Notes under the pieces: model-generated
Database searches by the model: none
Seen by the model: the letters and a program-made list of their open reading frames with translations, nothing else
What the model was told of the DNA's origin: nothing
Position numbers and translations under genes: made by a program
In this document: positions 1-63,890 of the stretch, one piece after another
Layout: each line of letters starts with the position of its first letter
Position numbering within the stretch: position 1 is the stretch's first letter
Source: Paragordius varius
Lineage: Eukaryota; Animalia; Nematomorpha
Direction of reading: 5' to 3'
NCBI GenBank assembly: GCA_964247055.1
Contig: OZ176052.1
Coordinates: 11,222,001-11,286,000, forward strand
DNA: 64,000 nt

Positions 1-941
1 TTCCGTTGCACAAAAATAACCTGGAATTCTTACATAAAATTATAGTTAGTTAGTTCCCCAACAAATATTATATTTTCTATTCCGCAATATTATATATATT
101 CATTTCTTTCATCAAAAATTTATAAAATGACAAAATAATAATAAAAACATATATTACAAATGTCATATTGTTTGTTTTTAAGAAGGGAAATATCTACGCA
201 TCCGCTAAACTCTTCGGACCAGGCGCCATCTGGTTAACATATCTTCGCGTATATGGCAGACACTAATTTTGATGGCATCGGGAAATAGCTTGACAAATGG
301 TTTGTCTTATAGGACACTCTTTTTCTGACACTGCGCTCATATATTACCTGAGAGATGGGCGAAATGTGCAGAATCCGATAGAAATATTTTAAATAAAATA
401 TATAAATGGTTTCATTACTGAAAAACAGTTAATACTTATCACTAAACCTGATGGTATATGAAAGGCAATGAGGATAATGGTAAGTTCGCCCACCTCATTT
501 TTAATATACACATGTTTAACATTTAAATTAATCTATCCTGTTTCCAATAAACGATTTTTTCATATCAACCTCCCTTCAAAAATAGACTAAATGACAGCAG
601 GCTTTTATATTTAAAAGAAACCAAGAGTTAATTAAAATGCAATGATCACAAAAATGTTGGTTACTGCCTTTTATTATAATAAAGTTCCATGATTAGAAGA
701 AAACTTTAACTTAAAAACTATGTGGATAATTTTGATTGGAAAAATGAGTGAAGCATTTATTTCTGGTTAAAAAACATTTTTTAATATATCTACCAAACAA
801 TACAAAGTTTTTGATTTAATAAGGTTAAAGTTTTAGAATGGTCAAACTTCTTAATTTTAAAACTTACATAAATAAAAATATATAATAAAACATGAGTTTT
901 TTATATTTATTTATTTTTATTACATATTGATAATTATTAAA

Positions 942-1612
942 TTATGGAAATGTCTTCCATATCATAGGACCCATATTCATATATTCGAATCTCCTCGCAC
1001 CATTTTTCATCGGACTTTTAGTTTTTAAACTGGACACAAAAGTTGAATTGCATACTTTATCCATCTTTTGCAGACGACAAAACTTGATGGGATCTATATA
1101 TTGATCTATTTAAAAATACTTGTAATTGATTATTAACACAGAATCTCTTTATATAAATTACCTTTTGTCTCACTGGGCCATAATTCGCCGGATTCATTCA
1201 AGGAAAAGAAAAAAGTAAATTCCTTTTTGGGAGATATTTTTTGAATCGGTGATAAATTTTCGACAGCATTCGTATTGTCTACCACACTCTCTACAGAGGA
1301 TTGGGATTTTTTTGAATTTTGCGACCAAGACATATTCACACTGAGACTATCAATGGCTGAATTTTCGACAGAAGTGTTTAGGTTCAAATGTAGATTGGAA
1401 TCTAATAAATAAATGAATAAGTAGTAATACAAAATTCATTTTAGTTTGAAAAGTATAATAATATGAATACTAGATATTGAAAGTAGTTGATTGCTTTCAG
1501 ACTCTGGTTTAAAACAAGAGAATCTTGAGAAAAGCGAAATAAACCAATGATAATTGCGTTTTCCACACTCAACGTTTTTTGTGTGATATTTCCTTTTCCC
1601 AAACATTTTCAT
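942..1612 (-). CDS. Array gene copy 1, three-exon orphan protein of ~177 aa, intact
   Basis: Exons 1612-1471, 1401-1162 and 1093-942 join in frame across GT-AG introns of 69 and 68 nt: MKMFGKRKYH...WFISLFSRFSCFKP...FTFFFSLNESGELWPSETKDPIKFCRLQ...RRFEYMNMGPMIWKTFP*. AATAAA lies shortly after the stop. Across copies, indels fall in introns rather than exons (one exception, copy 3). Confidence 0.75.
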
Positions 1613-2422
1613 AGTCAAAAGACGATGTTTTAGTTTTAGAATATAGTTAGTTTTAATAGTTGTAAATGTTTAAGAATTTTAAATGATTAACCAAAATGAT
1701 TGTTGTATGATATTGGTTGTTCTATTTTATATTATATAGGTTTGACATAAAAATACTTTTTAAAATTTTATTATTAATTTAGATTTCTTTTTAAGTTCAT
1801 AATATGTAGTTTATCATTCTTAGTTAAGGATTGTTAGAGTTAATATTGGATAAGAGGCGTTTTTAGTACTTTTTTATTAATTTAATAATTAAAGTTAGAT
1901 ATAAATATCAATCCATTTTTATATAATCTATATATATTAGTATGAACAAGATCGCTTCCGGTTTAAAAAATTGGTTCCCATGAAAAGGAAACCGTTTTGA
2001 TTCGGTTAAAAACCGAGTTATATTTTTAAATTTTTTTGTGGTAAAGATATTGTAAAAAAGTTTTCAAATATTTTGTCACGTATATTTAGCTATCATAAAA
2101 ATGGAAAATAAACTTATTTTGTGTGTATTTTGGGTAAAAAGTATACATATTATATTATACGGTAAAAGGCGCACGTGTTCAATCCTTATACCTTTCTGAT
2201 ACAAAAACACAATAAAAATTATAAATATCCCTTTTTGAAATAGAAGAAGGACCTTTTTTAAAAACGCACAAATACTTTGGTACTGTGCTCGCTATAATGA
2301 CTCGAATAGTAGGAAAAAACATGGCTCGTGATCCGCATAACCTCTTTCTTAGAATTTCTAATTAAAGTATTTTTGTATTATTAAACCAATTTTAATGTTT
2401 AGGGTTCCTAGTTTTAAATTAT

Positions 2423-4512
2423 TATTGTAGCAAAGATCGTTGTCGATTTATTGCTTTTTCGAAGGTGTATTTTCTCCAGTTTATTCGATTGTAAGTGACT
2501 GATGTTCGCTGTTGTAAAGAGAGATTGGTTTCTTTGGTTAGGTTTTCGATCCAACGCATCTTGCACCTTCCACGTTTCCTGGATCTTTCGACCTTGCCTG
2601 TCATTAGTTGGAATTCCAAGTCATTAGCTCTGGTAATGTGACCAAAGTATGATAATTTCATTTTGAGGCATATGCCAATCAGGTGTATCTCGGGGTTTAT
2701 TTTGTCAAGAATTACAGTGTTCTTTATTTTATCTTTCCAAGTGATTCGAAGTATCTTCCGCCAGCACCAGATTTCGAAGCGTTAATGTATTTTTCATCTA
2801 CCTTTTTTATTGTCCAGCTTTCTGATGCATATAGCATGCTAGGAAATATTAGGTCTTTAACTAAACGGATTTTTGTTTTAAGTTTGATGTCGTGTGATGA
2901 CCATAGTTTATTATATTTTATCATTTTTGTCTTAGCAATTCCTATTTTTTGATGTCCGGGGTGCTGTTGTTAGTTGTATTTATAAGACTGCCTAGGTAAG
3001 TGTATTGGGACACTACTTCTAGTTGTAAGTTGTGAAAAGATAAGTTGTTATAGTGGTTATGAGCGTTTATAATCATGATTTTAGTTTTTTTAAAGTTGAT
3101 CGTCAATCCAAATTTTTGACATTCGTTTGAGAATTCAGTTAAGAGTTTTTTTAGGTTGTCCACTGAGTTTGACAGCAGTATAGTGTCATCAGCATAGTGA
3201 AGTGATGATATAATATTGCCGGCGATGCGTATACCATTAGTTTTATCTATGTTCCGTAATACGCTTTCTATGCAAACGTTAAAAAGAGTGGGTGAAAGGA
3301 CGCATCCTTGTCGTAAACGATTGTTCATTTGTACCCAGTTACTTGTGCCATGTGGGGTTTTTATGTTTAGTGATAAATTGGAATAAAGGGATTTGATGAT
3401 GTTTAAAATGTGATCTGAAACTCCCATCTGAGATAGTGCCTTCCACAGCGTATCGTATTTCACGCTGTCGAAGGCTTTTGTAAAATCAATGAAGCAGATG
3501 TGGTTTCTTTCTGAAATTCAATTTGTTTTTCGAATATCCAAAGTATATTGCTGATCATGTCCCTGCATCCGCGATTGATTCTAAATCCCGCTTGGGTATT
3601 AGAAAGTTCGGCTTTAATTATGCCATGAATACGCCTGTGAATTATTTTGAGAAAAACTTTTGATGCTTGGTTGATTAGCGCTATAGTTCTATAGTTGTTA
3701 AATGATTTAGGATCGCCTTTTTTAAGATGGGGATGAGTATTGATTTGCACCAGTCTTGGGGGAATGAGGCGTGAGCAAATATCTTTTGGAATAAGTCAGT
3801 TAGGATATGAATTGGGATAAAACGAATGAGTTCGGTTGGATTATCGTTTACCCCTCAGATTTGTTGTTTGGGAAATGGTTGAGCGCCCATTCAACTTCTT
3901 CTTTGATGATCGGCGGGTCATGTTGATAGATATTACTGTTTTTATCGGCGTTCGATGGACTGGAGCCGTATAGTTTTAATACATATTGTTCCCATTGTTC
4001 CACCAGTGTTTTTTTGTCTGTGATGATATCTCCATCTTCATTTCTCATTGGGCCTTTGTAGATTTTAGACCTACGTGGAGCAATGTGATCTACTTCAGCA
4101 AAGTAGTTGTTGTTATGTTTAGCGTTTTCTAGTTTTAAGCACAGCTGATTGTAGTGAACGTTTTTGTCTTCCCGAGCGCTTTTTTGGAACTTTGCGTTAA
4201 GTGATTTGTATCTGCCGTTTTATTATTGCGTTTAGCTTGACGCCGTTTGTCCGCTAAATCTAAACTTTTTTGTGATAGTAATTTTGTTAAGATAGGATTT
4301 TTGGATAGGGATGCATTCTCTGGCTGTAGTACTAGTGATATTTTGTATTGTATTCCAAAGTTTTTCAGCGTCATCGTCTATTTCGAGTGTTTTAAATCTG
4401 TTTCAAGTAACAAAGGAAACTCGGGGGAGATCGCAGAAAAATCTAATTTAGGTTTATGCTGAAATCTTGGTTTGCGTGAGAGAACTGTTTTAATTTTTAG
4501 TTTAGCAGAAAA
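2423..4512 (-). mobile_element. 5'-truncated, frameshifted RTE-clade non-LTR retrotransposon
   Basis: Reverse transcriptase motifs QGCVLSPTLFN, YADD and YTYLGS, plus the RTE-type C-terminus LYASESWTIKK...LSYFGHI...MRW. (AAT)n-like 3' tail at ~2421. A 14 bp TSD TAGTTTTAAATTAT lies at 2409-2422 and 4586-4599. Confidence 0.9.
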
Positions 4513-4653
4513 AAAAATAACCACAACCTAGTTCTTTTGGGAGAAATAAATTGACTTTAAACAATTATAATTTAAAACTACAATGTAGTTTTAAATTATA
4601 ATTGTTTAAAGTCAATTTATTTCTCCCAAAAGAACTAGGTTGTGGTTATTTTT
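4513..4653. repeat. Perfect 141 bp palindrome (70 bp arms, 1 nt centre) at the LINE 5' junction
   Basis: 4513-4582 is the exact reverse complement of 4584-4653. The right arm is normal array spacer sequence. Confidence 0.95.
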
Positions 4654-5730: not shown

Positions 5731-5741
5731 TTGCCTTTTAA

Positions 5742-6566: not shown

Positions 6567-8363
6567 TTATGGAAATGTCTTCCATATCATAGGGCCCATA
6601 TTCATATATTCGAATCTCCTCGCACCATTTTTCATCGGACTTTTAGTTTTTAAACTGGACACAAAAGTTGAATTGCATACTTTATCCATCTTTTGCAGAC
6701 GACAAAACTTGATGGGATCTATATATTGATCAATTTAAAAATACTTGTAATTGATTATTAACACAGAATCTCTTTATATAAATTACCTTTTGTCTCACTG
6801 GGCCATAATTCGCCGGAATTATTCAAGGAAAAGAAAAAAGTAAATTCCTTTTCGGGAGATATTTTTTGAATCGGTGATAAATTTTCGACAGCATTCGTAT
6901 TGTCTACCACACTCTCTACAGAGGATTCGGATTTTTTTGAATTTTATGACCAAGACATATTCACACTGAGACTATCAATGGCTGAATTTTTGACATCAGT
7001 GTTTAGGTTCAAATGTAGATTGGAATCTAATAAATAACACTAGTCAACAAATTTGGACATTTTTGAGCACCACCACTCAAACTTTTAAATTATGACTAAT
7101 TTCAGTGTTTTAAAACCGAATGTAAAAAAATTTTTGATCCCGCCAATCAGAATTTTGAAATATTATAGGTTTTTCAATTTTTCAAAAACAAGAGAAAATC
7201 GAGAGAAAATTAAATATAACTTTATAATAAATTGTTATTATATTATAAACTTAATATCATTTAATAAAGCGTTTTAAACTCTATTTTTGAATATAAATGT
7301 GTCATTTAAATATCAGAGAGAAAAAAATATTACGGACTTAAACGTCATTTAGTCTTTTTCTTTCATGTGAATTTTTAATACGTATAAAAATTTTTTAAAA
7401 AAATACTAAAAAAGGCATTCTATGGTTTAAACCTTCGGCTTTTACATAGGCTATATTTTTTTTGTTACGAGTACTTATTAGGCTTTTTTTCTTGAGTTGG
7501 TTCTTACAAAAAATTCTTTATTTATACCTAGTGGATATATTTTATTTTTTAAAATTATTGGTTGTTTTGTATTTTTAATTTCAGATGGGTGTTGTGTAGC
7601 CACTTTTAGTAGAATTTACTATTATGGGATTGGACCATTTGTATTTAACTAATCTTTTTATTCAATTTAATTGTAGAATCTATCTAACTTTATTCTGTGA
7701 ATTGGTTAATTTAACATGTCAATTTGCCTGGATTTTGCTTGCAAGTCTCTCTTATCGGGCTTTACGATTACTTATTGTTATCTTTGCCATATCTGGCATA
7801 ATTGGATCGCTTGGGGGATATGCAGAGCTTGTGCAGCCGCCCGGATCTATCACACTATACATAAGCCCCTTTTAGATTTTTAATACTTTGGCTCTTAGCT
7901 TTAGTATCTTATTTAATGCCTATAATTTTGTTATTAATGCATGGAATATTACTTGTATTGACTTGTTCGTTTGAATATTTAAACATATGTACACGAGGAA
8001 TGATTGTTATTTTTAAATTAAATACAAATTTAAAAATTAAATTTCAAAAAATTCTATTGGTGGCCTCAATTTTCTTTTTTGTTTTGGCCTTTCCATGCCA
8101 TTAGGTGTCAGAAAATGCAAAAATAATGGGGTGGTACAAAACCTTGGTGAGCAGTGTAAATGAATAAGTAGTAATACATAATTCATTTTAGTTTAAAAAA
8201 GTATAATAACAATATGAATACTAGATATTGAAAGGTGTTGATTGCTTTCAGATTCTGGTTTAAAACAAGAGAATCTGGAGAAAAGTAAAATAAACCAATG
8301 ATAATTGCGTTTTCCACACTCAACATTTTTTGTGTGATCTTTCCTTTTCCCAAACATTTTCAT
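6567..8363 (-). pseudogene. Array gene copy 2, premature stop in exon 2 and a transposon in intron 1
   Basis: Exon 2 reads TCT TGG TCA TAA where other copies have TCG CAA. A 1119 bp element is inserted in intron 1 (7038-8156). Confidence 0.8.
7038..8156. mobile_element. Non-autonomous CMC/Chapaev3-like DNA transposon (1119 bp)
   Basis: Termini CACTAGTCAACAA / TTGGTGAGCAGTG with a 3 bp TAA TSD. Removing it restores intron 1 exactly as in other copies. Confidence 0.8.
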
Positions 8364-12957: not shown

Positions 12958-13173
12958 ACAATCACACTTCAGCGTAAACAATATCCATTATATATTCTAT
13001 TCCGCAATATTATATTTCTTTCATCACACTACCCATATTTCAAAAAATCTATAAACTGACAAAATAATAATAAAAACATATAATACAAATGTCATATTGT
13101 TTGTTTTCTAAGAAGGGAAATATCTACGCATCCGCTTAACTCTTCGGATCTGGCGCCATCTGGTTAACATATA

Positions 13174-14707
13174 CCATTTTTCATGCAAAAACATCATTTT
13201 TTCAAGCAAACGCACCATTTTTTTAAGCAAACGCAACATTTTTTCAAGCAAAGGCAACAATTTTTCAAGCAAATGCAACATTTTTTCAAGCAAAGACAAC
13301 ATTTTTTCAAGCAAACGCAACATTTTTTCAAGCAAACGCAACATTTTTTCAAGCAAACGCAACATTTTTTCATCCAAACGCAACATTTTTTCAACCAAAG
13401 ACAACATTTTTTCAAGCAAAAACAACACCTTTTTTAATATTACAAAGAATTACTATTTATTGTTAATTATAAATTATTTATTAAATTTTAAGTTAATGTA
13501 ATTTATTTTTAGCGTTGAATTATGATTTTTATCGTTTTATCATCAATATTTGATGGTAAAATGATTTTCAAACATTTTGAATTTGCCCATAAATTGCCTT
13601 ATTTATTTATATTAATTATATTTTTCCTTTACAATTTTTGTTTCGCCTAATCAAATTATTTAATTTGCACTTCAAGAGTGTCTTTGAAAGTTTAAAGTTG
13701 TCCTTCACTTCAAGTTGGTCCTTTGACTTTTTTGTTTTGTTTTTAACTTTTATTAATTAAATCGTAAATAATTTATCATTTTTATTGTTTTTAACCTATT
13801 TTCTATTATTTAACATAAATTTTAAATCGATATCATCTTTTAATCTTTGAGAAACCGTATATTAATTTCTCAAAATAATTTTAGATATTTATAACACGAA
13901 AAAAAATATATGAGTTTTCTGGGTTATTAAAAAATTTTCATTAAAAACATTAAAAGTTAATAATTTTGTTCAATTAAAAAAATATTTTGAAACAAAAAAG
14001 TGGTTTTTCAATAAAAATTTTTATTTTTAAATGGATAAATATATAATAAATAAAGAAAATTAGGTTAATAAATAATAATATATATTAAAAAATAAATGCA
14101 AAAATTAGGGTAAAACAAAATTTATATATTTTAAGGACCAACTTAAAGAGTTCAAGGACCAACTGGAAATGTTCAAGGACCAACTTGAAGTGTTCAAAGA
14201 CACTCTTGAAGTGCAAATTAAATAAATTGATTAGGCGAAACCAAAATTGTAAAAGAAAAATATAATTAATATAAATAAATAAGGCAATTTATGGGCAAAT
14301 TCAAAATGTTTGAAAATCATTTTACCATCAAATATTGATGATAAAACGATAAAAATCATAATTCAACGCTAAAAATAAATTACATTAACTTAAAATTTAA
14401 TAAATAATTTATAATTAACAATAAATAGTAATTCTTTGTAATATTAAAAAAGGTGTTGTTTTTGCTTGAAAAAATGTTGTCTTTGGTTGAAAAAATGTTG
14501 CGTTTGGATGAAAAAATGTTGCGTTTGCTTGAAAAAATGTTGCGTTTGCTTGAAAAAATGTTGCGTTTGCTTGAAAAAATGTTGTCTTTGCTTGAAAAAA
14601 TGTTGCATTTGCTTGAAAAATTGTTGCCTTTGCTTGAAAAAATGTTGCGTTTGCTTGAAAAAATGGTGCGTTTGCTTGAAAAAATGATGTTTTTGCATGA
14701 AAAATGG
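13174..14707. mobile_element. Foldback-type DNA transposon, 1534 bp, with ~515 bp near-perfect TIRs containing 21 bp tandem repeats
   Basis: TA|CCATTTTTCATGC ... GCATGAAAAATGG|TA. Arms at 13174-13688 and 14193-14707, each with about 12 copies of TTTTTTCAAGCAAACGCAACA. It replaces ~440 bp of the unit. Confidence 0.9.
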
Positions 14708-14956
14708 TATATAATAGTTCCATGATTAGAAGAAAACATAAACATAAAACTATGTGGATTATTTTGATTGGAAAAATGAGTGAGATTTCTGGTTAAAAAA
14801 CATTTATAAATATATTAACCAAAAATACAAGTTTTTGTAATTAGCTTAAAATTTTAGAATGGTCAAACTTCTTAATTTTAAAACTTGCATAAATAAAAAT
14901 AAAAAATGAGTTTTTTATATTTATTTAATTTTTATTACATATTTATAATTAATAAA

Positions 14957-15627
14957 TTATGGAAATGTCTTCCATATCATAGGACCCATATTCATATATT
15001 CGAATCTCCTTGCACCATTTTTCATCGGACTTTTAGTTTCTAAACTGGACACAAAAGTTGAATTGCATACTTTATCCATTTTTTGCTGAACACAAAACTT
15101 GATGGGATCTATATATTGATCAATTGAAAATACTTGTAATTGATTATTAAGACAGAATAGCTTTATATAATAAATTACCTTTTGTATTGCTGGGCCATAA
15201 TTCGCCGGATTCATTCAAGGAAAAGAAAAAAAAAATTCCTTTTTGGGAGATATTTTTTGAATTGGTGATAAAATTTCGACAGAATTCGTATTGTCTACCA
15301 CACTCTCTACACAGGATTCGGATTTTTTTGATATTTGCGACCAAGACACATTCACACTGAGACTATCAATGGCTGAATTTTCGACAGAAGTGTTTAGGTT
15401 GAAATGTAGATTGGAATCTAATAAATGAATGTGTATCAATACATATAAATTCCTTTTAGTTTAAAAAGTATAACAATATGAATACTAGATATTGAAAGGT
15501 GTTGATTGCCTTCAGACCCTGGTTTAAAACAAGAGAATCTGGAGAAAAGTGAAATAAAGCAATGAGAATTGCTTTTTCCACATTCAACATTTTTTGTGTG
15601 ATCTTTCCTTTTCCCAAACATTTTCAT
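14957..15627 (-). pseudogene. Array gene copy 3, 1 bp frameshift in exon 2
   Basis: At ~15226-15235 a run of 10 A replaces the 11-base AAAAAAGTAAA of other copies. The ORF track splits exon 2 into two frames. A homopolymer assembly error is possible. Confidence 0.6.
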
Positions 15628-18099
15628 AGTCAAAAGACGAGTTTTAGTTTATAGTTAGTTTTGATATTTGTATATGTTAAAGAATTTTAAATGATTAACC
15701 AAAATGATTGTTGTATAATATTGGTTGTTCTATTTTTTATTATAAAAATGGTATTTGACATAAAAAATTCTTTATGTTTTTGTTATTAACTGGGATTTCT
15801 TTTTTAGTTAATCATAATATATAGTTTATCATTCATAGTTACAGATATTTAGAGTCAATCTTGGATAAGAGGCGTTTTCAGTACTTATTTTATTAATTTA
15901 ATAATTAAAGTATGATATAAATAACAATCCATTTTTTATATAATCTATATATATTAGTATGAACAAGATCGCTTCCGTTTTAAAAAATTGGTTCCCATGA
16001 AAAGGAAACCGTTTTGATTCGGCTAAAGCCGACTTATATTTTTAAATTAGAGTTACTCTTTTTATGCGGTAAAGATATTGTGAAAAAGTTTTCAAATATT
16101 TTGTCATATATATTTAGCAAGCATAAAAATGGAAAATAACCTTATTTTGTGTGATAATTATTTGGGGTAAAAAGCATAACTACTATACTATACGGTAAAA
16201 GGCGCACAGGTTTAATGCTTATACCTGTCTGATTTCAATGCTAAATAGAACAAAAACACTATAGAAATTATAAATATCTCATTATAAAATAGAAGAAGGA
16301 CTATGTTTAAAAAACGCACAAAAAACTGTGTATCCCTCGCTATAAAGACTCAAATTGTATGAAAAGATATGGTCGTAATCTGCATCCTAACCTCTTAATT
16401 ATAATTTCTAATTAAATTATTTTTGTATTATATAACCAATTTTGATGTTTAGGGTTCCTAATTTTTAAATTATAATTGTTTGAAGTCATTTATATCCCCC
16501 AATAGAACTAGGTTGTGGTTATTTTTGAGAAGTTAAAAAATCAATTTTTTAATTAGAAATTATTAAATCGAATAGGTAGCATCATTGAAATTTAAAATTA
16601 CTGTTTATTAAACTTATTATGACGGGATTAGGGTCATACTCCACATTTTGGAAGAGGACTGCTATACAGAACACTTTACATATTAAAAAAAATCTTCAAC
16701 TGTTGATGACCGTTTTGAAGCCGTTTCTTAAACTAAAATCTATTTAAAAAAAATACAGTGTCAGATAGACATAAAATATTTAATAGTTGTAACCGATAAG
16801 ATGCAACATATATTTTTATAAATAACAGGCGTTAATTCTCAGAATTTTATGAAACAGTGATGATTGCTAAAAATATTTGCAAAGCGTTTTGTGAGCAAAC
16901 CAGCGACTATTAAATTTTCCAGGCAATAAGAAGAAAAACGAATCAATCCTTTGATTTTAAATTGCACTGACCAAAATTTATATACTATTTTACAAAAAAT
17001 TTGCCGTGTAATCAATTACTTATTATTAATTAGCTTATCTCTTTGTTTTAAAATATAATGGTTGCTAATTACCACGTTTGCTTAATTTAGATTTAGGTAA
17101 TCTAATTTTTTTTTAATATAATTATTTGTGAACTTTTTAATTGAGCAATCAAACTGGTAAATATAACATATTCCATTGCACAAAATAAAATTCCTGGAAT
17201 TCTTACGTAAAATTATAGTTAGTTAGTTCCCCAACAAATATTATATTTTCTATTTCGAAATATTTTTCATCACACTACACACAAAAAATCTATAAAATGA
17301 GAAAATAATAATAAAAACATATATTACAAATGTCATATTGTTTGTTTTTAAGAAGGGAAATATCTACGCATCCGCTGAACTCTTCGGACCTGGCGCCATC
17401 TGGTTAACATATCTTCGCGTCTATAAGAGACACTAATTTTAATGACATCGGGAAATAGCTTGACAAATGGTTTGTCTCATAAGACACTCTTTTTCTGGCA
17501 TTGCGCTCATATATTACCTGAGTGATGGGCGAAATGTGTAGAATCCGATAAATATTTTGAATAACATATGGTTCCTTTACTAATAAACCAGTAAAATCTT
17601 ATCACTAAACCTGATGGTATATGAAAGACAATGAGAAAAATGGTGACAAAGTTCGCCCGTCTCATTTTTAATGTCTACATGTTTAACATTTAAATAAATG
17701 TATCCTGTTTCCAATAAACGATTTTTTAATATCAATATCCCAAAAATAGACTAAATGACAGCAGGCTGTTACATTCAAAATAAACCAAGAGTTAATTAAA
17801 ATGCGATGATTTCAAAAATGTTGGTTAGTGCCTATTATTATAGTTCCATGAGTAGAAGAAAACATAAATAAAAACTATGTGGATTATTTTAATTGGAAAA
17901 ATGAGTCAGGCTTTCCGTTTTTATTTCTGGTTAAAAAAAATTTATAAATATATTTACCAAAAATACAAGTTTTTATAACTAGGTTAAAGTTTTAGAATGG
18001 TCAAACTTCTTAATTTAAAAACTTACATAAACAAAAATATAAAAAAACGCGAGTTTTTTATATTTATTTAATTTTTATTACATATTGATAATTAAGAAA

Positions 18100-21209: not shown

Positions 21210-21888
21210 TTATGGAAATGTCTTCCATATCATAAGACCCATATTCATATATTCGAATCTCCTCGCACCATTTTTCATCGGACTTTTAGTTTTTAAACTG
21301 GACACAAAAGTTGAATTGCATACTTTATCCATCTTTTGCAGACGACAAAACTTGATGGGATCTATATATTGATCAATTTAAAAAATACTTGTAATTGATT
21401 ATTAAACATAGAATAGCTTTATATAATAAATTACCTTTTGTATCACTGGGCCATAATTCGCCGGATTCATTCAAGGAAAAGAAAAAAGTAAATTCCTTTT
21501 TGGGAGATATTTTTTGGATCGGTGATAAATTTTCGACAACATTCGTATTGTCTACCACACTCTCTACAGAGGATTCGGATTTTTTTGAATTTTGCGACCA
21601 AGACATATTCACACTGAGACTATCAATGGCTCAATTTTCGACATCATTGTTTAGGTTCAAATATAGATTGGAATCTAATAAATAAATGAATGTGCATCAA
21701 TACATAATTCATTTTAGTTTAAAATAAAGTATAACAATATGAATACTAGATATTGAAAGATGTTGATTGCTTTCAGATTCTGGTTTAAAACAAGAGAATC
21801 TTGAGAAAAGTGAAATAAACCAATGATAATTGCGTTTTCCACACTCAACATTTTTTGTGTGATATTGCCTTTTCCCAAACATTTTCAT
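21210..21888 (-). pseudogene. Array gene copy 5, premature stop in exon 2
   Basis: Exon 2 reads GAA AAT TGA where other copies have GAA AAT TCA (~21631). Confidence 0.8.
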
Positions 21889-22987
21889 AGTCAAAAGACG
21901 AGTTTTAGTTTTAGAATATAGTTAGTTTTGATAGTTGTAAATGTTAAATAATTTTAAATGATTAACCAAAATGATTGTTGTATGATATTGGTTGTTCTAT
22001 TTTTATTATATAGTTTTGACATAAAAATACTCTTTAAAATTTTTTATTATGAATTGAGATTTCTTTTTAAGTTAATCATAATAATAAAGCTTAACATTCA
22101 TAGTTAAAAATTGTTAGTGTCAATCTTGGTAAAATAAATTTTAGTTAGATATGAGTATAAATCCATTTTTTATATTATCTATATATATTTTAAGTATGAA
22201 CATGATCGCTTCCATTTTCAAAAATTTGGTTACATGTAAAACGGGAACCGTATTGATTTTCCGAACTGTTAAAAATATAAAAAAGCGGATACAGTTATTT
22301 TTAAAATTACAATAAAAACTCTATTTATGCAGTAAAGATATTAAGAAAAAGTTTCATAAATAGTCATAATTATTAATTCAAGTCATGTATATGTAGCTAG
22401 TATAAAAATGGAAAATAACCTTTTTTTGTGTGTATTTGGGGTAAAAAGTATGTATACATATTATATTATACGGTAAAAGGCGCACGGGTTCAGTGCTTAT
22501 ACCTCTCTGATTTCATTGCTAAATATAACAAAAACACCATATAAAAACTTAAATATCCCATTTTAAAATAGAAGAAGGACCATTTTTTAAAAAGGCACAA
22601 AAAACTGTGTATCCCTCGCTATAATGACTCAAATTGTAGGAAAAGACATGGATCTGCATCCTAACCTAATGTGACCAGATAGGCTGTTTTTCGCAGTACA
22701 GTACTGGATTTTCAGAAAAAAACGGCGACTGTACTGCGCTCATTTTTGTACTGCTTTTTGAAATTAAAAAATATTTTTTTTAATATATTAATTACCTTTT
22801 ATTTATTTAAAAAAATTATTTTAGAATTTAATATAGTACCCTCTGTAAAAATAACCCCATCATATATAAAGAAATGGTTCATTTTGCGGTAAACAAAGAT
22901 TGCCTTTTTTTAATTGGTTAATATTTTATTTTTTGCTCGAATTATACATAAAATTGGGTTTTGGATCGGTCACTCCGCTTATTAGGA

Positions 22988-24461
22988 TAATGTGACCAGA
23001 TATTTTTAACTCGGACGCAGTACAAAATTAAAACATACTTTGCATGTTTTTACACCATCGGTGTTGTATTTTACAAAGTTTCCACAAAAAAATATTCTGA
23101 TGAAATGTATATTCTGATAGGAATATATCAGGATTATCATGGCGTTTTAACCTTTACGAGTTATTAAAGAAAATTATTTACACTTTTGTGGTAGGTGTTC
23201 CGTATAAAATTGCAAAAGGTGCGCAATTTTTTCATATATATTTTTTGGTGAAAGAAGTGTTTTATTTCAAAAAATATCACTAAAATATATAAAGCATATA
23301 TAAGAAACAAAACTATATTAAAATTTTTTAAATTGTTGGATGTGGGCTCTGAAAGTCCCAAATTTTTTGGCTTTTTTAAAATGGACTGTTCTCTCAAAGA
23401 AAACGCAATAATTCCGACATTTTGAACAATTTTAAATATAAGCTAAATTTTGATATCAACTAAAATATTTTTCAAAAACTTTCAAAAATTTATTTTTCAA
23501 AATTTTGTTGAAGCGTACTTCATACTATTTTCAGCATGATGGAAACGTAAACGGTTGAGATGTTATAAGACTTTATATATATATTTCGATAATGGTATAC
23601 GTTTTCCTCTCTCAGAATTATTGTGTTTTACAAATATTCACCAAAATTTCTTTAAATTACCTATAGTAATGTTCAACATCATCGAATTATTTAGAAAAAG
23701 GGTTTAATTATATATTATAGCGTTAAACCGTTTCCATCATTCGTCCAAAGTACGCTTCAACAAAGAATCTCAAATTTGTTTATGCAAAAAATAAGAAAAC
23801 TAATAAAAATTAAAGTTTAGGAAAAACATTAAGAAATATCATACCTCCCACCTAATCAGTATAGAAAACGTAAAAAATTCAATTTTTTAATGCGAAAACA
23901 TATGCCATATATAATAAATTTTGAATAATATGTTACGGGAATACAATTTTCTATATAATTTCCCATTTGATAATTTTAACAAAAAATGAACTTTCTCAAC
24001 CTGATCAAAAATTTATTATATCATAAATTAATTTTATATTAAATTTTGAGGCCTCTTTTTGCGGAGGCCCTGAGTGAAAAATCCTTTAGCCTCAATCTTA
24101 CGGTGGAATGGGAGATTTATAGTTTCGCCACTGCACGAAAAGCTGCAATCTTTAGCGGTTTGACCGATCCAAAATCCAATATGTATAATTCGAGCAGAAA
24201 ATAAAATATTAACCAATTAAATAGACCAATCTTAGTTTTTACCGTAAAATGAACCATTTCTTTACAAATTATGGGGTTATTTTTACAGAGGGTACTATAT
24301 TAAATTCTAAAATAATTTATTTCAAATAAAAGGTAATTAATATATTAAAAAAAATATTTTTTAATTTCAAAAAGCAGTACAAAAATGAGCGCAGTACAGT
24401 CGCCGTTTTTTTCTGAAAACCCAGTACTGTACTGCGAAAAACAGCCTATCTGGTCACATTA
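22988..24461 (-). mobile_element. Same-family hAT element (inner, E2) inserted in inverted orientation inside E1
   Basis: Same TIRs, with an 8 bp TSD TATTAGGA / TGTTAGGA. Its reverse complement aligns along E1. Confidence 0.85.
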
Positions 24462-25039
24462 TGTTAGGATTGCACCCTTTGGCGCAGTGGCGAAACTTTA
24501 AATCTCCGACTCCACCGTAGGATTCAGGCTAATGGCTCTTTCACTCAGGACTTCCGCAAAAAGAGGCTTCAGAATATCATAAATTAACAAAATAATTTAT
24601 TTTAATAAATGTTTGATTAAGTTTAGAAAGGTTATTTGTTAAATTATCAAACGGTAGATTATATAAAAAATTATATTCCCATAACATATTATTTAAAATT
24701 TATTATACATGTTAATAGTTTTTACGTTTTCTATGCTCATAGGTAGGAGATATTATTTCTTGTTTTTTCTTTAACTTTGATTTTTATTAGTTTTCAATTT
24801 TTTTTGAATAAACAAATTTGAGATATTTTTTTAAAGCGTACTGTAAACTATTTTATAGCATAATCGGAAACAGTATAACGCTTTAAAATATAATAAAACC
24901 CTTTTTCTAAATAATTCGATGATTTTGAACATTATTATTGGTTGAGAATTTTAATTTGGTTTGTTTGCTTTCAAATTTTGGTGAATTTTTGTAAAAAACA
25001 CAATAATTCTGAGTGATAAAAATGTTTAAAATTATCGAA

Positions 25040-25600
25040 TCTATATATTTATAAAAATGGAAAATGCTGGCTTTGTGATCTCTTTCCGGAAAACCGGGAG
25101 ACCCATTCAAATCCAAATATCGAAAAAATATAATTATTAATGGGTGTCCCGACAATATCTTCGCCCTTTTTTGAATTAGGCCTCCAGTTCGGGCCCACCC
25201 CGTGTAAAAAAAGGGTTTTTTTGAAAACAGAAGTCCACAAAAATCTTTTCTTTGAGACAATTTTCCGGAGAACGTGTTGGATCATTTAATTTCAAATATA
25301 ATTTTTGTTTAGTTATTTTCGATTGCGCCGAACATATTCGGCTCGCTTTTTTAATTAGGCCCTCTTTTTACCCGCTCCCCCGTAAATTGCCATTTTTTTC
25401 AAAAAACAAAGTCCACAAAAATAATTTTTTAAATCTATTTTCCCCCCAAGTAAACAATAAATTGGTATGAATGCACCGTTTTAAAATTCCTATGAAATCA
25501 TAGCTAATAGATAATGTTTTGTTTTATTGTCGCTCCCCCCCCAGCCCCAGAAGTCCGAAGAACTTCCTCGGGCTGCGTAGCAGCACGAGATTTACGCTAG
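25040..25600 (+). mobile_element. Non-autonomous Helitron nested in E1
   Basis: 5' A|TCTATATATTTATAAAAATGG; 3' hairpin CTCGGGCTGC-GTA-GCAGCACGAG (25567-25589) followed by CTAG|T at 25597-25601. No TSD. Absent from the homologous position of E2. Confidence 0.85.
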
Positions 25601-27629
25601 TTATATATATAAATGGTTTAACTTAACCGTTTATATCGTTTCCATCATGGACAAAATAGTATGAAGTACGCTTTACAAAATTTTGCTAAAAATTGAATTT
25701 TGATAGTATGCATTTTTTAAAAATATATTTAGTCGATATCACAATATAGCATATATTTAAAATTATTGAACAATGGAGAACAGTCCATTTTAAAAGAGGC
25801 AAACAGTTTGGGACTTTTAGGGCCTACATCTAAAAATTTGAACAAAAGGCACCATGATAATCCTGATATTTTCCTATCAGAATAAATATATTTCATCTGT
25901 ATATTTTTTTATGGAAATTGTGTAATATACCACACCGATGTAAAAACAAACCAAGTATATTTTAATTTTGTACTGCGTCACAGTTTAAAATATCTGGTCA
26001 CATTATCCTAACCTCTTTATTTGAATTTCTAAATTAAATTTTTTTTGTATTTATAACCAATTTTAATGTTTAGGATTCCTAATTTTTAAATTATAATTGA
26101 TTGAAGTCATTTAATTTCCAAAAGAACTAGGTTGTGGTTCTTTTTAAGAACTAAAAATTAACAATTTTCTATTAGATGTTGTTCAATCGAATAGGTATCT
26201 ATTTAAGTTTAAGATTACTGTTTATTAAACTTATTATGGGGTTAGGTCATCCTATATTGTATTTTGGAACACGACTGCTATACAGTCCACTTTACATATA
26301 AAAGAATCTTGAACTGATCTTTTGATAACAGTTTTGAAGCCGTTTCTTAAATCCATTTAAACCAATTCACAGTGTCAGATTTTACATTGAGAATAGGATA
26401 GGGGGAAATAATTAAGAGTTTTAACTGCTAAGATACAACATACTTAATAACAGGTGTTAATTCTCAGAATTTTAAGAAAAAATGATGATTGCTAAAATGA
26501 TTTGTAAAGCGTTTGTGAGCAAACCAGAAACTTTATGAATCCGTTGGTATTTATTTTTTTACAAAAAATTTGTCGTGTAATCAATTACTTATTATTAATA
26601 ATTGGTTAGTTTATCTCTTTGTTTAAAAATATAATGATTGCTAATTACTACGTTTGCTTAGATTAATGTAGATTTAGTTAATCATTAATTTTTTCAATAT
26701 AATTATTTGTGGACTTATAATTGAATCAAACTGGTAAATATAACATTTTCCGTTGCATAAAAATTAAATTCCTGGAATTCTTACATAAAATTATAGTTAG
26801 TTAGTTCCCTAACAAATATTATATTTTCTATTCAGCAATATTATATATATTTATTTCATCACACAACACACATTTCAAATCTATAAAATGACAAAATAAT
26901 AATAAAAACATAGATTACAAATATCATATTGTTTGTTTTTAAAAAGGGAATATCTACGCATTCGCTGAACTCTTCGGACCTGGCGCCATCTGGTTAACAT
27001 ATCTTCGCGTTTATGGGAGACACTAATTTTGAGGACATCGGGAAATAGCTTGACAAATGGTTTGTTTTATAAGACACTCTTTTTTCTGGCATTGCGCTCA
27101 TATATTACCTGAGATATCGGCGAAATGTGTAGAATCGTATAAAAAATGTTTTGTATAAAATAAATAAATTGTTCCATTACTAACGAACCAGTAAAAACTT
27201 AACACACACATGTTTAACATTTAAATAAATATATTGTTTCCAATAAACGGTTTTTTCATATCAATATCCCTTTAAAAATAGACTGAATGACAGCAGGCTG
27301 TTACATTTAAAAGAAACCAAGAGTTGATTAAAATGCGATGATCACAAATATGTAGGTTACTGCCTTCTATTATAATTGTTCCATGATTAGAAGAAAACTT
27401 TAACTTAAAACTATGTGGATTATTTTAATCGGAAAAATGAGTGAGGCTTTCAATTTTTATTTCTGGTTAAAATACAATTATAAATATTTTTACCACAAGT
27501 TTTTATAATTAGCTTAAAGTTTTAGAATGGTCAAACTTCTTAATTTTAAAACTTACATAAATAAAAATATAAAAAATAAAATATTTTTATATTTATTTAA
27601 TTTTTTATTACATAAATATAATTAATAAA

Positions 27630-28308
27630 TTATGGAAATGTCTTCCATATCATAAGACCCATATTCATATATTCGAATCTCCTCGCACCATTTTTCATCG
27701 GACTTTTAGTTTTTAAACTGGACACAAAAGTTGAATTGCATACTTTATCCATCTTTTGCAGACGACAAAACTTGATGGGATCTATATATTGATCAATTTA
27801 AAAAATACTTGTAATTGATTATTAAACATAGAATAGCTTTATATAATAAATTACCTTTTGTATCACTGGGCCATAATTCGCCGGATTCATTCAAGGAAAA
27901 GAAAAAAGTAAATTCCTTTTTGGGAGATATTTTTTGAATCGGTGATAAAGTTTCGACAGCATTCGTATTGTCTACCACACTCTCTACAGAGGATTCGGAT
28001 TTTTCTGAATTTTGCGACCAAGACATTTTCACACTGAGACTATCAATGGCTGAATTTTCGACAGAAGTGTATAGGTTCAAATGATGATTGGAATCTAATA
28101 AATAAATGAATAAGTAGTAATACATAATTCATTTTAGTTTAAAATAAAGTATAACAATATGAATACTAGATATTGAAAGGTGTTGATTCCTTTCAGACTC
28201 TGGTTTAAAACAAGAGAATCTTGAGAAAAGTGAAATAAACCAATGATAATTGCGTTTTCCAAACTCAACGTTTTTTGTGTGATCTTTCCTTTTCCCAAAC
28301 ATTTTCAT
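27630..28308 (-). CDS. Array gene copy 6, intact
   Basis: Three open exons with conserved GT-AG sites. Exon 3 ends MGLMIWKTFP. Confidence 0.75.
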
Positions 28309-30016: not shown

Positions 30017-30643
30017 TAGGGTTGTGCTGACTAAGTGATGACCAGGTCAGTGACTATTTATTTTTTGACCATGGTCATTTAAAAAAACACCTGTTGTTTG
30101 AAAAATTGCTGGTAAATTATTTTGGAAGAGAGATAGTAAGATTTTATTGTTTTTTATATATTTTTTAAAAATTATAAACAAAATATTTAATTATGATTAT
30201 TTAACAATAATTGTTAAACATGCATCCTTATAACATTAGCATTTAAGTATATCCAGTTATTTAGAAAAACAATCAAGCACTTTGCAAAATATGCAGTTAT
30301 TCCATATATGTGAATTAATAAAATGAAATAACATTTTATAATTGAATATTTTAGTGATAAACGAAAATGTAAAACTAGAAAATTTTATTCGAAATATCTG
30401 GTATTAAAAGCTATGTATTTGAAGATTTAAAAGGCCACAAAAACAAAATTATTGTATAAATTTGATTGAAAATATTTGTAAATAAATATCAAAAATATGT
30501 ATAATACAAACTTTAAAGAAAAAACATGACATAAGTGAAACGCAAGTGTCGTTAAAACATTATTTTCACAATCCTGGTCATGACCATGGTCTGACTGGGC
30601 CTGAGTGGACTTTTTTGAAAAAGCAGTCAAATGCACAACCCTA
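30017..30643. mobile_element. Non-autonomous hAT-like element (627 bp) without TSD
   Basis: TIR TAGGGTTGTGC / GCACAACCCTA. The two flanks come from different positions of the unit spacer. Confidence 0.8.
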
Positions 30644-31929
30644 GATACAACATATGTAATAAAGAACAGGTGTTAATTCTCAGAGTTTTATGAAACGGTG
30701 ATGATTGCTAAAAATATTTGCAAAGCGTTTTGTGAGCAACGAGCAACTTATATTATATTTCCAGGCAATAAAAATAAAAACGTATAAATCCATTTGTTTT
30801 AAATTACATAGACCAAAATTTATATACTATTTTACAAAAAATTTGTCGTATAATCAATTACTAATTAATAATTAGCTTATCTCTTAGTTTAAAAATATAA
30901 TGGTTGCTAAATACTACGTTTGCTAAATCTAGATTTAGTTAATCTTTAATTTTTTCAATATAATTATTTGTGAACTTTTTAATTGAGCAATCAAACTGGT
31001 AAATATAACATATTCCGTTGCCTAAAATAAAATTCCTGGAATTCTTACATAAAATTATGGTTAGTTAGTTCCCCAACAAATATTATATTTTCTATTCCGC
31101 AAAATTATATATATTCCTTTCTCTCATCACACTACACACACACATTTCAAAAAATCTATAAAATGACAAAATAATAATAAAAGCATATATTACAAATGTC
31201 ATATTATTTGTTTTTAAGAAGGGAAATATCTACGCATCCACTAAACCAGGCGCCATCTGGTTAACATATCTTCGCCCCTATGGAAAACAGTAATTTTGAT
31301 GACATCGGGAAATAGCTTGACAAATGGTTTGTCACATAAGACACCCTTTTTTCTGACATTGCGCTCATATATTACTTGAGAGATGGGCGAAATGTGTAGA
31401 ATCCGATAGAAATATTTTAAACAAAATAAATAAATGGTGCCTTTACTAAAAAACCAGTATAACCTATCACTAAACCTGATGTTATATGAAAGTCAGTGAG
31501 GAGAATGGTAAGTTCGCCCGCCTCATTTTTAATGTCCACATGATTAACATTTAAATAAATCTATCCTGTTTCCAATAAACGATTTATAGACTAAATGACA
31601 GCAGAATGTTATATTTAAAAGAAACCAAGAGTTGATTAAAAATGCGATAATCACAAAAATGTAGGTTACTGCCTTTTATTATAATAGTTTTATGATTAGA
31701 AGAAAACATAAACTTAAAAACTATGTGGATTATTTCAATTGGAAAAATGAGTGAGGCTTTCCGTTTTATTTCTGGTTAAAAACAATCATAAATATATTTA
31801 CCAAAAATACAAGTTTTTATAATTAGGTTAAAATTTTAGAATGGTCAAACTTCTAAATTTTAAAACCATAAATAAAAATATAAAAAATAAAACATGAGTT
31901 TATATATTTATTTAATTTTTATTAATAAA

Positions 31930-32603
31930 TTATGGAAATGTCTTCCATATCATAGGACCCATATTCATATATTCGAATCTCCTCGCACCATTTTTCATCG
32001 GACTTTCAGTTTTTAAACTGGACACAAAAGTTGAATTGCATACTTTATCCATCTTTTGCTGATGACAAAACTTGATGGGATCTATATATTGATCAATTTA
32101 AAAATACTAGTAATTGATTATTAACACAGAATCTCTTTATATAATAAGTTACCTTTTGTATCACGGGGCCATAATTCGCCGGATTCATTCAAGGAAAAGA
32201 AAAAAGTAAATTCCTTTTTGAGGGATATTTTTTGAATCGGTGATAAATTTTCGACAGCATTCGTATTGTCTACCACACTCTCTACAGAGGATTCGGATTT
32301 TTTTGAGTTTTGCGACCAAGACATATTCACACTGAGACTATCAATGGCTGAATTTTCGACATAAGTGTTTAAGTTTAAATGAGGATTGGAATCTAATAAA
32401 TAAATGAATAAGTTGTAACACATAATTCATTTTAGTTTACAAAGTATAATAATATGAATACTAGATATTGAAAGGTGTTGATTGCTTTCAGACTCTGGTT
32501 TAAAACAAGAGAATCTTGAGAAAAGTGAAATAAACCAATGATAATTGCGTTTTCCACACTCAACATTTTTAGTGTGATATTTCCTTTTCCCAAACATTTT
32601 CAT
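31930..32603 (-). CDS. Array gene copy 7, intact
   Basis: Three open exons with conserved GT-AG sites. Confidence 0.75.
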
Positions 32604-34877: not shown

Positions 34878-36103
34878 GATACAACATATGTAATAAAGAA
34901 CAGGTGTTAATTCTCAGAGTTTTATGAAACGGTGATGATTGCTAAAAATATTTGCAAAGCGTTTTGTGAGCAACGAGCAACTTACATTAAATTTTCCAGG
35001 CAGTTTTAAATTACATAGACCAAAATTTATATACTATTTTACAAAAAATTTGTCGTATAATCAATTACTAATTAATAATTAGCTTATCTCTTAGTTTAAA
35101 AATATAATGGTTGCTAAATACTACGTTTGCTTAATCTAGATTTAGTTAATCTTTAATTTTTTCAATATAATTATTTGTGAACTTTTTAATTGAGCAATCA
35201 AACTGGTAAATATAACATATTCCGTTGCCTAAAATAAAATTCCTGGAATTCTTACATAAAATTATGGTTAGTTAGTTCCCCAACAAATATTATATTTTCA
35301 ATTCCGAAATATTATATATATTCCTTTCTCTCATCACACTACAACACATTTCAAAAAATCTATAAAATGACAAAATAATAATAAAAGCATATATTACAAA
35401 TGTCATATTATTTGTTTTTAAGAAGGGAAATATCTACGCATCCACTAAACTCTTCGGACCAGGCGCCATCTGGTTAACATATATTCGCCCCTATGGAAAA
35501 CAGTAATTTTGATGACATCGGGAAATAGCTTGACAAATGGTTTGTCACATAAGACACTCTTTTTCTGGCATTGCGCTCATATATTACCTGAGAGATGGGC
35601 GAAAGTGTAGAATCCGATAAAAAATATTTTTAATAAATAAATGGTTCCTTTACTGAAAAACCAGTAAAAACTTATCACTAAACCTCATGTTATATGAAAG
35701 TCAATGAGGAGAATGGTGACAAAGTTCGCCCGTCTCATTTTTAATATATATATGTTTAACATTTAAATAAATAGGCTGTTACATTTAAAATTAACCAAGA
35801 GTTGGTTAAAAATGCGATGATCACAAAAATGTAGGTTACTGCCTTTTAATATAATAGTTCCATGATTAAAAGAAAACATAAACTTAAAATCTATGTGGAT
35901 TATTTTGATTGGAAAAATGAGTGAGGCTTTCCGTTTTTATTTCTGGTTAAAAAACATTTATAAATATTTTAGCCAAAAATACAAGTTTATAATTAGTTAG
36001 AATTGTCAAGCTTTTTAATTTTAAAACTTACATAAATAAAAATATAAAAAATATATATGTTTTATATTTATTTAATTTTTATTACACATTGATAATTAAT
36101 AAA

Positions 36104-36780
36104 TTATGGAAAAGTCTTCCATATCATAGGACCCATATTCATATATTCGAATCTCCTCGCACCATTTTTCATCGAATTTTTAGTTTTTAAACTGGACACA
36201 ATAGTTGAATTGCATACTTTATCCATCTTTTGCTGATGACAAAACTTGATGGGATCTACATATTGATCAATTTAAAAATACTTATAATTGATTATTAACA
36301 CAGAATCTCTTTATATAATAAATTACCTTTTGTATCACTGGGCCATAATTCGTCGGATTCATTCAAAGAAAAGAAAAAAGAAAATTCCTTTTTGGGAGAT
36401 ATTTTTTGAATCGGTGATAAATTTTCGACAGCATTTGTATTGTCTACCACACTCTTTACAGAGGATTCGGATTTTTTTGAATTTTGCGACCAAGACATAT
36501 TCACACTGAAACTATCAATGGCTGAATTTTCGACAGTAGTGTTTAGCTTCAAATGATTATTGGAATCTAATAAATAAATTAATAAGTAGTAATACATAAT
36601 TCATTTTAGTTAAAAAAGTATAATAACAATTTGAATACTAGATATTGAAAGGTGTTGATTGCTTTCAGACTCTGGTTTAAAACAAGAGAATCTTGAGAAA
36701 AGTGAAATAAACCAATGATAATTGCGTTTTCCACACTCAACATTTTTTGTGTAGTCTTTCCTTTTCCCAAACATTTTCAT
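36104..36780 (-). CDS. Array gene copy 8, intact
   Basis: Three open exons with conserved GT-AG sites. Confidence 0.75.
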
Positions 36781-38924
36781 AGTCAAAAGACGAGTTTTAG
36801 TTTTAGAATATAGTAAGTTTTGATAGTTGTTAATGTTAAAAAAATTTAAATGATTAACCAAAATGATTGTTGTATAATATTGGTTCTATTTTTTATTATA
36901 TAAATGGTATTTGACATAAAATGACTCTTTATGTTTTTGTTATTAACAGAGATTTCTTTTTAAGTTGATCATAATATGTATTTTATCATTCATAGTTACA
37001 GATTGTTAGAATCAATTTTGGATAAGAGGCGTTTTGGCAGTGCTTATTTCATTAATAAAATAAATTTTTGGTAGATATGAGTATCAATTCATTTTTTATA
37101 TAATCAATATATATCTCAAGTATGAACATGATCGCTTTCGTTTTCAAAAACTTGGTTCCCATGCAAAAAGGAAACCGTTATGATTCGGTTTTTCCGAAAT
37201 GTTGTCAGTCAATATAAAAAACCGATACAGTTATATTTCTAAGTACAGTTAAATCTCTTTTTATGTGGTAAAGATATTCTAAATAATTTTGTAAAATAGT
37301 TACAATTATTTCAAATAAATTGTCATGTGTATATTTAGCTAGCATAAAAATGGAAAATAAACTTTTTGTAAAAATATTTGGGGTAAAAAGCATACCTACT
37401 ATACGGTAAAAAACTCAAGGGTTCAATGCCTATACCTCTCTGATTTCAATGCTAAATATAACAAAAACAGTATGAAAATTATAAATATCCCATTTTAAAA
37501 TAGAAGAAGAACTATTTTAAAAAAACACACAAAAAACTGTGTATCCCTCGCTATAATGAATCAAATTGTAGGAAAAGACATGGTCGTAATCAGCATCCTA
37601 ACCTCTTACTTAGAATTTCTAATTATTTTTGTATTATATAACCAATTTTAATGTTTAGAGTTCCTAATTTCTAAATAATTGTTTGAAGTCATTTAATTTC
37701 TCTCAAAAGAACTAGGTTGTGGTTATTTTTGAGATGTTAAAAATTTATCAATTTTTTAATTAGATATTGTTCAATCGAATAGGTAGCATAATATAAATTT
37801 AAAATTACGTTTATTGGACTTATTATGATACGATTAGGGTCATACTCCACTATATTTTGGAACAAGACTGCTATACAGACCACTTAACATATTAGAAAAA
37901 TCTTGAACTGATCTAATTTTGATGAGCCGTTTCTTATACTAAAATCCATTTAAAACAATTTACGGTGTCAGATTTTACATTGAAAATAGGGGGGAAGAGT
38001 TGTAACCGATAAGATACAACTATTTAATAAAAAACAGTGTTAATTCTCAGAATTTTAAGAAACAGTGATGATTGCTAAACTGTTGTGTCAAGCGTTTTGT
38101 GCGTAAACCAGCAACTTTATGAATCCGTTGGTTTTAAATTGCACAGACCAAAATTTATATACTATTTTACAAAAAATTTGTCGTGTAATCAATTACTTAT
38201 ATTGATTAACTTATCTCTTTGTTTAAAAATTTAATGGTTGCTATTACTACGTTTGCTTAATTTAGATTTAGGTAATCTCTAATTTTTTCTCAATATATAA
38301 TTATAATTGTTTTTTGGACTTTTTAATGGAGCAATCAAACTGGTAAATATAACATATTCCGTTGCACAAAATAAAATTCCTGGAATTACATAAATTTTAG
38401 TTAGTTCCCCAAAAAATATTATATTTTCTATTCCGCAAAATATATATATATATATATATTCCTTTCTCTCATCACACTACACACACATTTCAAAAAATCT
38501 ATAAAATGACAAAATAATAATATAAAAACATATATTACAAATGTCATATTGTTTGTTTTTAAGACACAAAAAATACATAACAGCTTACAAAATGTATATT
38601 TTATTGGGAAAATTTTAATTTATATACATACATATAACAATCAATACATAACATATCAACCGTTGTGATATATACAAAACATTTTTTTTTTGCCTTATTG
38701 ATAATAATCAAATTTTTTTGCCTTCATCGAACTGAAATTATATTGGGCCAATATCATTTGCTCGTGTCAATAAAATACCTTTGGGCATTTTTTTAGCTAT
38801 ATATTAATTTTTTCAAAATCAATCAACATAACATTTTAAAAGTATGAAAATTAACATGATATATGCAAAAAACTAATTCATGTTTAAAATAATGGATATG
38901 TCATGTTCATTCATTTCAAGCAAC

Positions 38925-39624: not shown

Positions 39625-63890
<24,266 letters not shown>

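Follow-up and report, generated by a model that had tools for sequence, protein, structure and literature searches.

A tandem array of a lineage-restricted three-exon gene in the genome of Paragordius varius

An array of complete genes

We analyzed a window of 64,000 nucleotides from the nematomorph Paragordius varius (assembly GCA_964247055.1, contig OZ176052.1; G000:C3:11222001-11286000 in our numbering), in which a small spliced gene of the minus strand is repeated in tandem. The genome searched comprises 110 Mb in 44 contigs, with a GC content of ~26%. Using the three exons of copy c4, taken as the reference, as BLAST queries, we found the gene eight times within the window and another three times in the 14 kb directly upstream, for a total of 11 copies, with the three exons in order in all of them. 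A BLAST search with the whole 3,110-nt unit placed the array between window positions −13983 and 38564, a span of 52.5 kb containing 11 whole units. The left edge of the array, at G000:C3:11208017, lies 13983 nt before the window start and begins in the same unit register in which the right edge ends. The basic unit measures 3.1 kb and is arranged head to tail, all 11 copies being on the minus strand and none inverted. Furthermore, a probe back-translated from the peptide WFISLFSRF matched eight sites in the window, each of them on the minus strand, whereas 100 shuffles gave no match, and direct-repeat families with eight members corroborated the repeated unit in the window.

The original prediction, made from the letters of the window, had described a head-to-tail unit of ~3.1 kb in at least eight copies, with a right boundary at 38563. 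The unit and the copy number were borne out, and the boundary was essentially exact. As for the periodicity, the size of the unit stood while the uniform spacing did not: the distances between consecutive window copies are 5625, 8390, 3143, 3110, 6420, 4300, and 4174 nt, thus 4.2-8.4 kb where insertions lie, and this unevenness (up to 8.4 kb) is due to transposon insertions. The units diverge from each other by 4-15% and carry different transposon insertions. The locus is a tandem array of a complete gene in diverged copies, and neither a satellite nor an assembly artefact. The coordinates of its features are collected in Table 1.

Table 1. Features of the array within the 64,000-nt window
Feature	Position	Strand	Details
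Window part of the array	1..38564	-	8 of 11 units; BLAST with exons and whole unit
c1, intact	942..1612	-	exons 1471-1612, 1162-1401, 942-1093; BLAST and gene model
c2, disabled	6567..8363	-	exons 8222-8363, 6787-7026, 6567-6718; TAA at 6944-6946 in exon 2
c3, disabled, most diverged	14957..15627	-	exons 15486-15627, 15179-15417, 14957-15108; 1-nt deletion near 15233, frameshift
c4, intact, reference	18100..18773	-	exons 18632-18773, 18323-18562, 18100-18251
c5, disabled	21210..21888	-	exons 21747-21888, 21435-21674, 21210-21361; TGA at 21631-21633 in exon 2
c6, intact	27630..28308	-	exons 28167-28308, 27855-28094, 27630-27781
c7, intact	31930..32603	-	exons 32462-32603, 32153-32392, 31930-32081
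c8, intact	36104..36780	-	exons 36639-36780, 36327-36566, 36104-36255
Putative core promoter block of c4	18851..18894	-	TATATAAT, then AAATAGAACAACCAATA, then ACAACAATCA
Short 3' untranslated region (3'UTR) of c4	18055..18099	-	AATAAA signals 22-40 nt after stop
Identical tract, 606 nt	20911..21516	.	identical to 27331-27936; 3' part of c5/c6 genes and 300 nt downstream
Retrotransposon fragment, c1-c2 spacer	2428..4589	-	reverse-transcriptase open reading frames 2942-3750; RVT_1 E 1e-22
Foldback element, c2-c3 spacer	13169..14712	.	532-nt arms, 98% complementary, 480 nt apart
Inverted-repeat-rich insertion, c5-c6 spacer	22667..26005	.	3.3 kb
Dispersed high-copy element, c6-c7 spacer	30017..30645	.	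~630 nt; 489 first-look candidates genome-wide
Old short interspersed repeat, in every unit	17430..17570	.	second conservation island of the spacer

The gene model comprises exons of 142, 240, and 152 nt (the third including the stop codon TAA), for a total of 177 codons, and two phase 1 introns. Intron 1 (GTATTC..TAG) measures 68-72 nt, with the exception of c2, in which an insertion of ~1.1 kb brings it to 1195 nt, and intron 2 (GTAAYT..TAG) measures 68-73 nt. The start codon, the splice sites, and the stop codon are conserved across the copies, and in every copy the ATG is preceded by an in-frame stop. The GC content is 31-36% in the exons, 16% in the introns, and ~20% in the flanks. The introns of the neighboring gene, a kinase of the MARK/PAR-1 family, are of similar size and have equally weak GT donors, so the model fits the local splicing style. 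These results agree with the spliced three-exon minus-strand gene of ~177 aa originally proposed, and the peptide motifs quoted for it are present.

In the whole array, eight copies keep the full frame and three of the 11 carry a stop or a frameshift. It had been stated that the introns vary in length by non-multiples of three and that the exons carry a single indel: both statements are correct, while the in-frame stops of c2 and c5 had been overlooked. Since the single exon indel is itself a frameshift, it adds to these two stops in disabling window copies. A different case is the upstream copy cB (window −9617 to −9629), in which the acceptor of intron 2 has been lost by a change from AG to AA. 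Here, a 5-nt duplication (GATCA) provides another AG 12 nt upstream that preserves the frame and would lengthen the coding sequence by four codons. This in-frame replacement of the acceptor gives independent support to the intron model.

Selection on the frame and conservation of the gene ends

The mean pairwise p-distance among copies is 0.040-0.056 in the exons, 0.07-0.09 in the introns, and 0.11 in the 300-nt flanks, and it reaches 0.15 at 301-600 nt upstream and 0.32 at 301-600 nt downstream. To count changes, every distinct variant was entered a single time, and the counts were scaled with the substitution spectrum of the neighboring non-coding DNA. Only two nonsense changes were present vs 15.2 expected at the non-coding rate (0.13×), and the depletion also held at the exons' own rate (7.8 expected, P = 0.014). 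For indels, the 534 nt of exons showed one event vs 31 expected at the intron rate or 48 at the flank rate, where the expectation comes from AT-rich and homopolymer-rich non-coding DNA, more indel-prone than exons. The reading frame is protected by selection: it has been held open in eight copies and lost in three.

At the level of residues, the mean Nei-Gojobori ratio of non-synonymous to synonymous substitutions (dN/dS) was 0.58 over all pairs and 0.53 among the intact copies. The variable residues are spread like a Poisson process, with no over-dispersion, and there is therefore no sign of diversifying hotspots. Thus, from the depletion of indels and nonsense changes on one side and the modest dN/dS on the other, the frame is strongly protected while the identity of the residues is weakly constrained. 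The original idea of a lineage-specific amplified family selected to keep its frame finds support in these depletions, in the dN/dS of 0.53-0.58, and in the absence of an outside relative from the exon-level searches.

The gene also carries its own control regions. A putative promoter block recurs in every unit, 94-121 nt upstream of the ATG, and is whole in all the window copies but c8, where three bases are missing. A 17-mer from this block matches 10 of the 11 units exactly. Across the 110 Mb genome there are two other exact sites, 12 in all: one at a paralogous locus on contig C6 (described below) and one on contig C5, where no gene of the array family lies beside it. At the other end, the 3'UTR contains a block, TAAATAAATATAAAAA, conserved in the C6 paralog. 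The gene amplified into 11 units, and homogenized by gene conversion, is complete, with a conserved promoter and 3' end of its own.

The search for a single-copy relative in the genome, suggested at the outset, was successful. Genome-wide six-frame searches with single exons and exon profiles retrieved only the 11 array copies and one locus on contig C6, a diverged paralog on the minus strand (L005:3452-4235) with two exons and ~152 codons. The two proteins have in common the start MK[LMI]FGKRK, a second GK[RK] site, and the motifs WFIS and SCxKP in the first 40 residues, as well as a C-terminal GPM[IL]W[KR]xxP directly followed by the stop; their middle parts do not align at all. At the DNA level, they share the promoter block (TATATAAT, AAATAGAACAACCAATA, ACAACAATCA), at about 100-130 nt from the ATG when both genes are considered, the start-codon context, and the 3'UTR block with its polyadenylation signal. 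When the motifs of the two protein ends were searched as degenerate DNA patterns, only the array and the C6 locus were recovered, plus a GPMLWR site on C6 at 9.36 Mb. The latter was rejected as evidently due to chance, being surrounded by retrotransposon-like debris and lacking the N-terminal motif. The C6 paralog reveals the stretches of the protein and of its control regions that have lasted over a much longer time.

Turnover of the array and its neighborhood

The tree of the copies is nearly star-like, and only c5 and c6 group with support. These two copies share the 606-nt identical tract reported in Table 1, and their units are ~90% alike outside it; in addition, the c6-c7 and c7-c8 spacers have ~850 nt of near-identity in common. 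Since the units bearing these tracts are overall 88-90% alike, the tracts are the result of gene conversion or recent exchange.

Several insertions are private to single units, namely the fragment bearing the reverse transcriptase, the element in intron 1 of c2, the foldback element, and the 3.3 kb block rich in inverted repeats. In each arm of the foldback element, a 21-nt subrepeat (TTTTTCAAGCAAACGCAACAT) occurs ~12 times. We also observed a perfect palindrome of 67 nt, its arms separated by 1 nt, where the reverse-transcriptase-bearing insertion has its edge (4516-4650). The ~630-nt element, copies of which occur by the hundreds in the genome at 76-81% identity, is probably a non-autonomous transposon family. 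A copy 98% identical lies at the same place of the next unit (about 34237-34884), which indicates that the units were still duplicating after this element landed. With the exception of the old short interspersed repeat, the remaining spacer is unique to the array, so the unit is not itself a mobile element.

On the other side of the array boundary, the window contains the MARK/PAR-1 family kinase gene on the plus strand (46578-64000), with the exon of the N-terminal kinase domain at about 46.6 kb and the KA1-domain exon at 63611-63901, the latter matching the human MARK1 and MARK3 structures (E 1e-26). An open reading frame rich in Ser, Thr, and His (39625-40212) may be the first coding exon of this gene or a separate gene. 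The introns of the kinase gene contain a 21/63-nt tandem repeat (AGGGTGAATTTGAATTGTTTA) at 53.2, 57.5-58.0 (57788-57990), and 61.2 kb, and the same repeat lies directly upstream of the C6 paralog (L005:4500-4840). Being present at both places, it is probably a dispersed satellite-bearing element. A long dinucleotide microsatellite at 49164-49253 also matches L005:4855-4886.

Nature of the product and alternative explanations

The array protein starts with MKMFGKRK, and 22 mostly polar or basic residues precede its only hydrophobic stretch, itself broken by Arg and Ser. The WFISLFSRFSCF stretch, which follows the basic N-terminus, has the spacing of an amphipathic helix. AlphaFold predicted a helix at exon-1 residues 12-31 with modest confidence (predicted local distance difference test, pLDDT, ~73 around WFISLFSRF); two helices were also predicted, at low confidence, in the last exon of the C6 paralog. 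Exon 2 is acidic, rich in Ser and Asn, and contains SP sites, and this middle part of the protein is probably disordered. Conservation is highest in the last 11 residues.

Homology searches were run exon by exon. The exons of two copies, each searched in Pfam on its own, gave no match up to an E of 10. A word-indexed collection of 5.8 billion protein clusters contained no match to the longest natural open reading frame spanning exon 2 (110 aa) or to the 98-aa one of exon 1 of the C6 paralog. When the exon-1 profile was searched exhaustively against 1.84 billion representatives, the only match was to a neuropeptide-precursor-like protein, and we rejected this match as low-complexity: it consists of six short stretches on GKR(N/D/E)Y repeats. 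Scans of metagenome and viral contigs gave pattern matches only, none of them confirmed, searches of PDB sequences with the exons gave nothing significant, and the ESM Atlas search gave scores of at most 0.79 and no relative. Scanning the window for Rfam families and for tRNAs gave nothing, and the exon motif CAGCTG was not enriched in the window. No domain had been recognized in the original prediction, and this remained the case for every exon; neither a known family nor a transposon protein was matched in these exon-level searches, which also returned no homolog outside the lineage. On these grounds, the gene appears to be an orphan, restricted to its lineage.

Two other identities were considered and set aside. 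The two GKR sites, and the exon-1 match mentioned above, recall a neuropeptide or other secreted precursor, but by eye there is no signal peptide, and there are no peptide repeats. As for a transposable-element gene, the family occurs only in the array and at the C6 locus, the spacer is unique to the array, and no Pfam domain is present.

Taken together, we consider that a lineage-restricted protein-coding gene has been amplified in place, and that its product would be intracellular and its copy number related to dosage, with a probability of about 0.6. A 3.1 kb segment with one complete gene gave rise to 11 head-to-tail units, presumably by unequal crossing-over; later, gene conversion and further duplication of units took place, with some copies dying and transposons entering the spacers and one intron. 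The product may be a small intracellular adaptor or regulator acting via short linear motifs, in which a disordered linker would join the basic and amphipathic N-terminus to a docking motif at the C-terminus. The array would serve dosage rather than diversification, because the copies are near-identical, dN/dS is below 1, and there are no hypervariable sites.

This kind of evolution has precedents. Tandem lineage-specific (orphan) families evolve by birth-and-death and concerted evolution, and the array resembles them in its complete head-to-tail units with their own promoter, its gene-conversion tracts, its star-like tree, its scattered pseudogenized copies, and its lack of outside relatives. 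The protein family is new, while the phenomenon, tandem amplification of an orphan gene, is of a known kind. The difference is that this protein family matches nothing known, so there is no function to borrow.

Several points weigh against this interpretation. The splice junctions, and the expression of the gene, are deduced from the genomic sequence, and the role as an adaptor acting by dosage is read from composition and motifs. In the window, three of the eight copies (c2, c3, and c5) are already disabled, leaving five intact (c1, c4, c6, c7, and c8). The constraint on residues is weak, with non-synonymous changes at 0.51× and synonymous changes at 0.66× the non-coding rate, and the synonymous excess is non-significant in a spectrum-matched test (p = 0.08). 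Part of the exon conservation could be explained by gene conversion, and the indel-prone reference DNA mentioned above bears on the strength of the indel depletion. Furthermore, the per-exon AlphaFold models have low confidence (pLDDT 52-59).

Some of these same observations would be expected of an array in decay, once functional and now redundant, in which nothing but the C6 paralog, or else one or two copies, would still matter and the conservation of the frame is historical. Such decay would account for the stops and frameshift in three of the 11 copies, for the transposons in the spacers and in one intron, and for the weak residue constraint. We consider it rather unlikely, since eight copies have the full frame despite 4-6% exon divergence and, summed over all branches, nonsense and indel changes are far under the neutral expectation. 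Moreover, the acceptor lost in cB has been compensated in frame, and the promoter is preserved almost throughout the array, with c8 the only window copy whose block is not whole and one unit of 11 lacking the exact 17-mer.

A second explanation is a genetic-conflict amplicon, that is, a germline driver or suppressor whose copy number escalated in an arms race, as for Stellate/Su(Ste), Slx/Sly, and Dox-type systems. The resemblance to those systems is only general: the protein is small, young, lineage-restricted, and fast-evolving, its gene is amplified in tandem with duplication ongoing, and a diverged paralog lies on another contig. We regard this as unlikely. All 11 copies have one orientation, with no inverted or antisense copies that could provide a hairpin RNA, dN/dS stays under 1 and no site is hypervariable beyond the Poisson expectation, and exon searches of the whole genome found no second amplified partner family. 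A more specific proposal makes the array one side of a germline conflict, as a recently born driver or suppressor of escalating copy number, with the C6 paralog as its progenitor or antagonist. It is likewise unlikely, and no such conflict is known to have been described in this lineage.

Stellate/Su(Ste), wtf, and Sdic, to which the original prediction had alluded, can be compared with the array one by one. In Drosophila melanogaster, Stellate is a homolog of CK2-beta, while the action of Su(Ste) relies on antisense transcripts and piRNAs. The array is similar to Stellate/Su(Ste) in having a small protein gene in tandem and related sequence at a second locus, but its exons have no match to CK2 or any other Pfam family (E up to 10), its copies all face one way, and the C6 locus is single and much diverged. 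The wtf genes of fission yeast are also a fast-evolving and lineage-restricted multicopy family. They encode multi-pass membrane proteins and are dispersed, often beside long terminal repeats, whereas the array protein has one short amphipathic stretch with no evident membrane spans, and the layout is strictly tandem. Finally, Sdic of D. melanogaster, also a tandem array of recent age, consists of a newly formed gene that is documented to be chimeric, from two known parents. In our case, similarity to the C6 paralog is confined to the ends of the gene and the middle exon has no match, so that a chimeric origin as in Sdic is possible.

Lastly, although there is no homolog, domain, or confident fold, it is very improbable that the array is non-coding, with a fortuitous open reading frame in an RNA, in a regulatory module of MARK/PAR-1, or in part of a mobile element, since the depletion of stops and indels coincides with the three exon blocks and indels do occur in the two intervening introns, GC content steps at the exons, the C6 paralog keeps the protein ends in the same frame, Rfam has no match, and the spacer is not dispersed in the genome.

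The amplification and maintenance of the lineage-restricted gene offer a clean and well-delimited case of how a new gene is multiplied and kept, with exact edges, dated transposon insertions, and visible conversion tracts. To this, the array adds a splice site that was lost and replaced in frame, together with a paralog that pinpoints the parts of the protein and of its regulation that matter. The array gene remains an annotated orphan family unless a sex-, stage-, or tissue-specific role proves true, in which case it would offer a handle on the lineage-specific biology of a poorly studied and extremely AT-rich animal.

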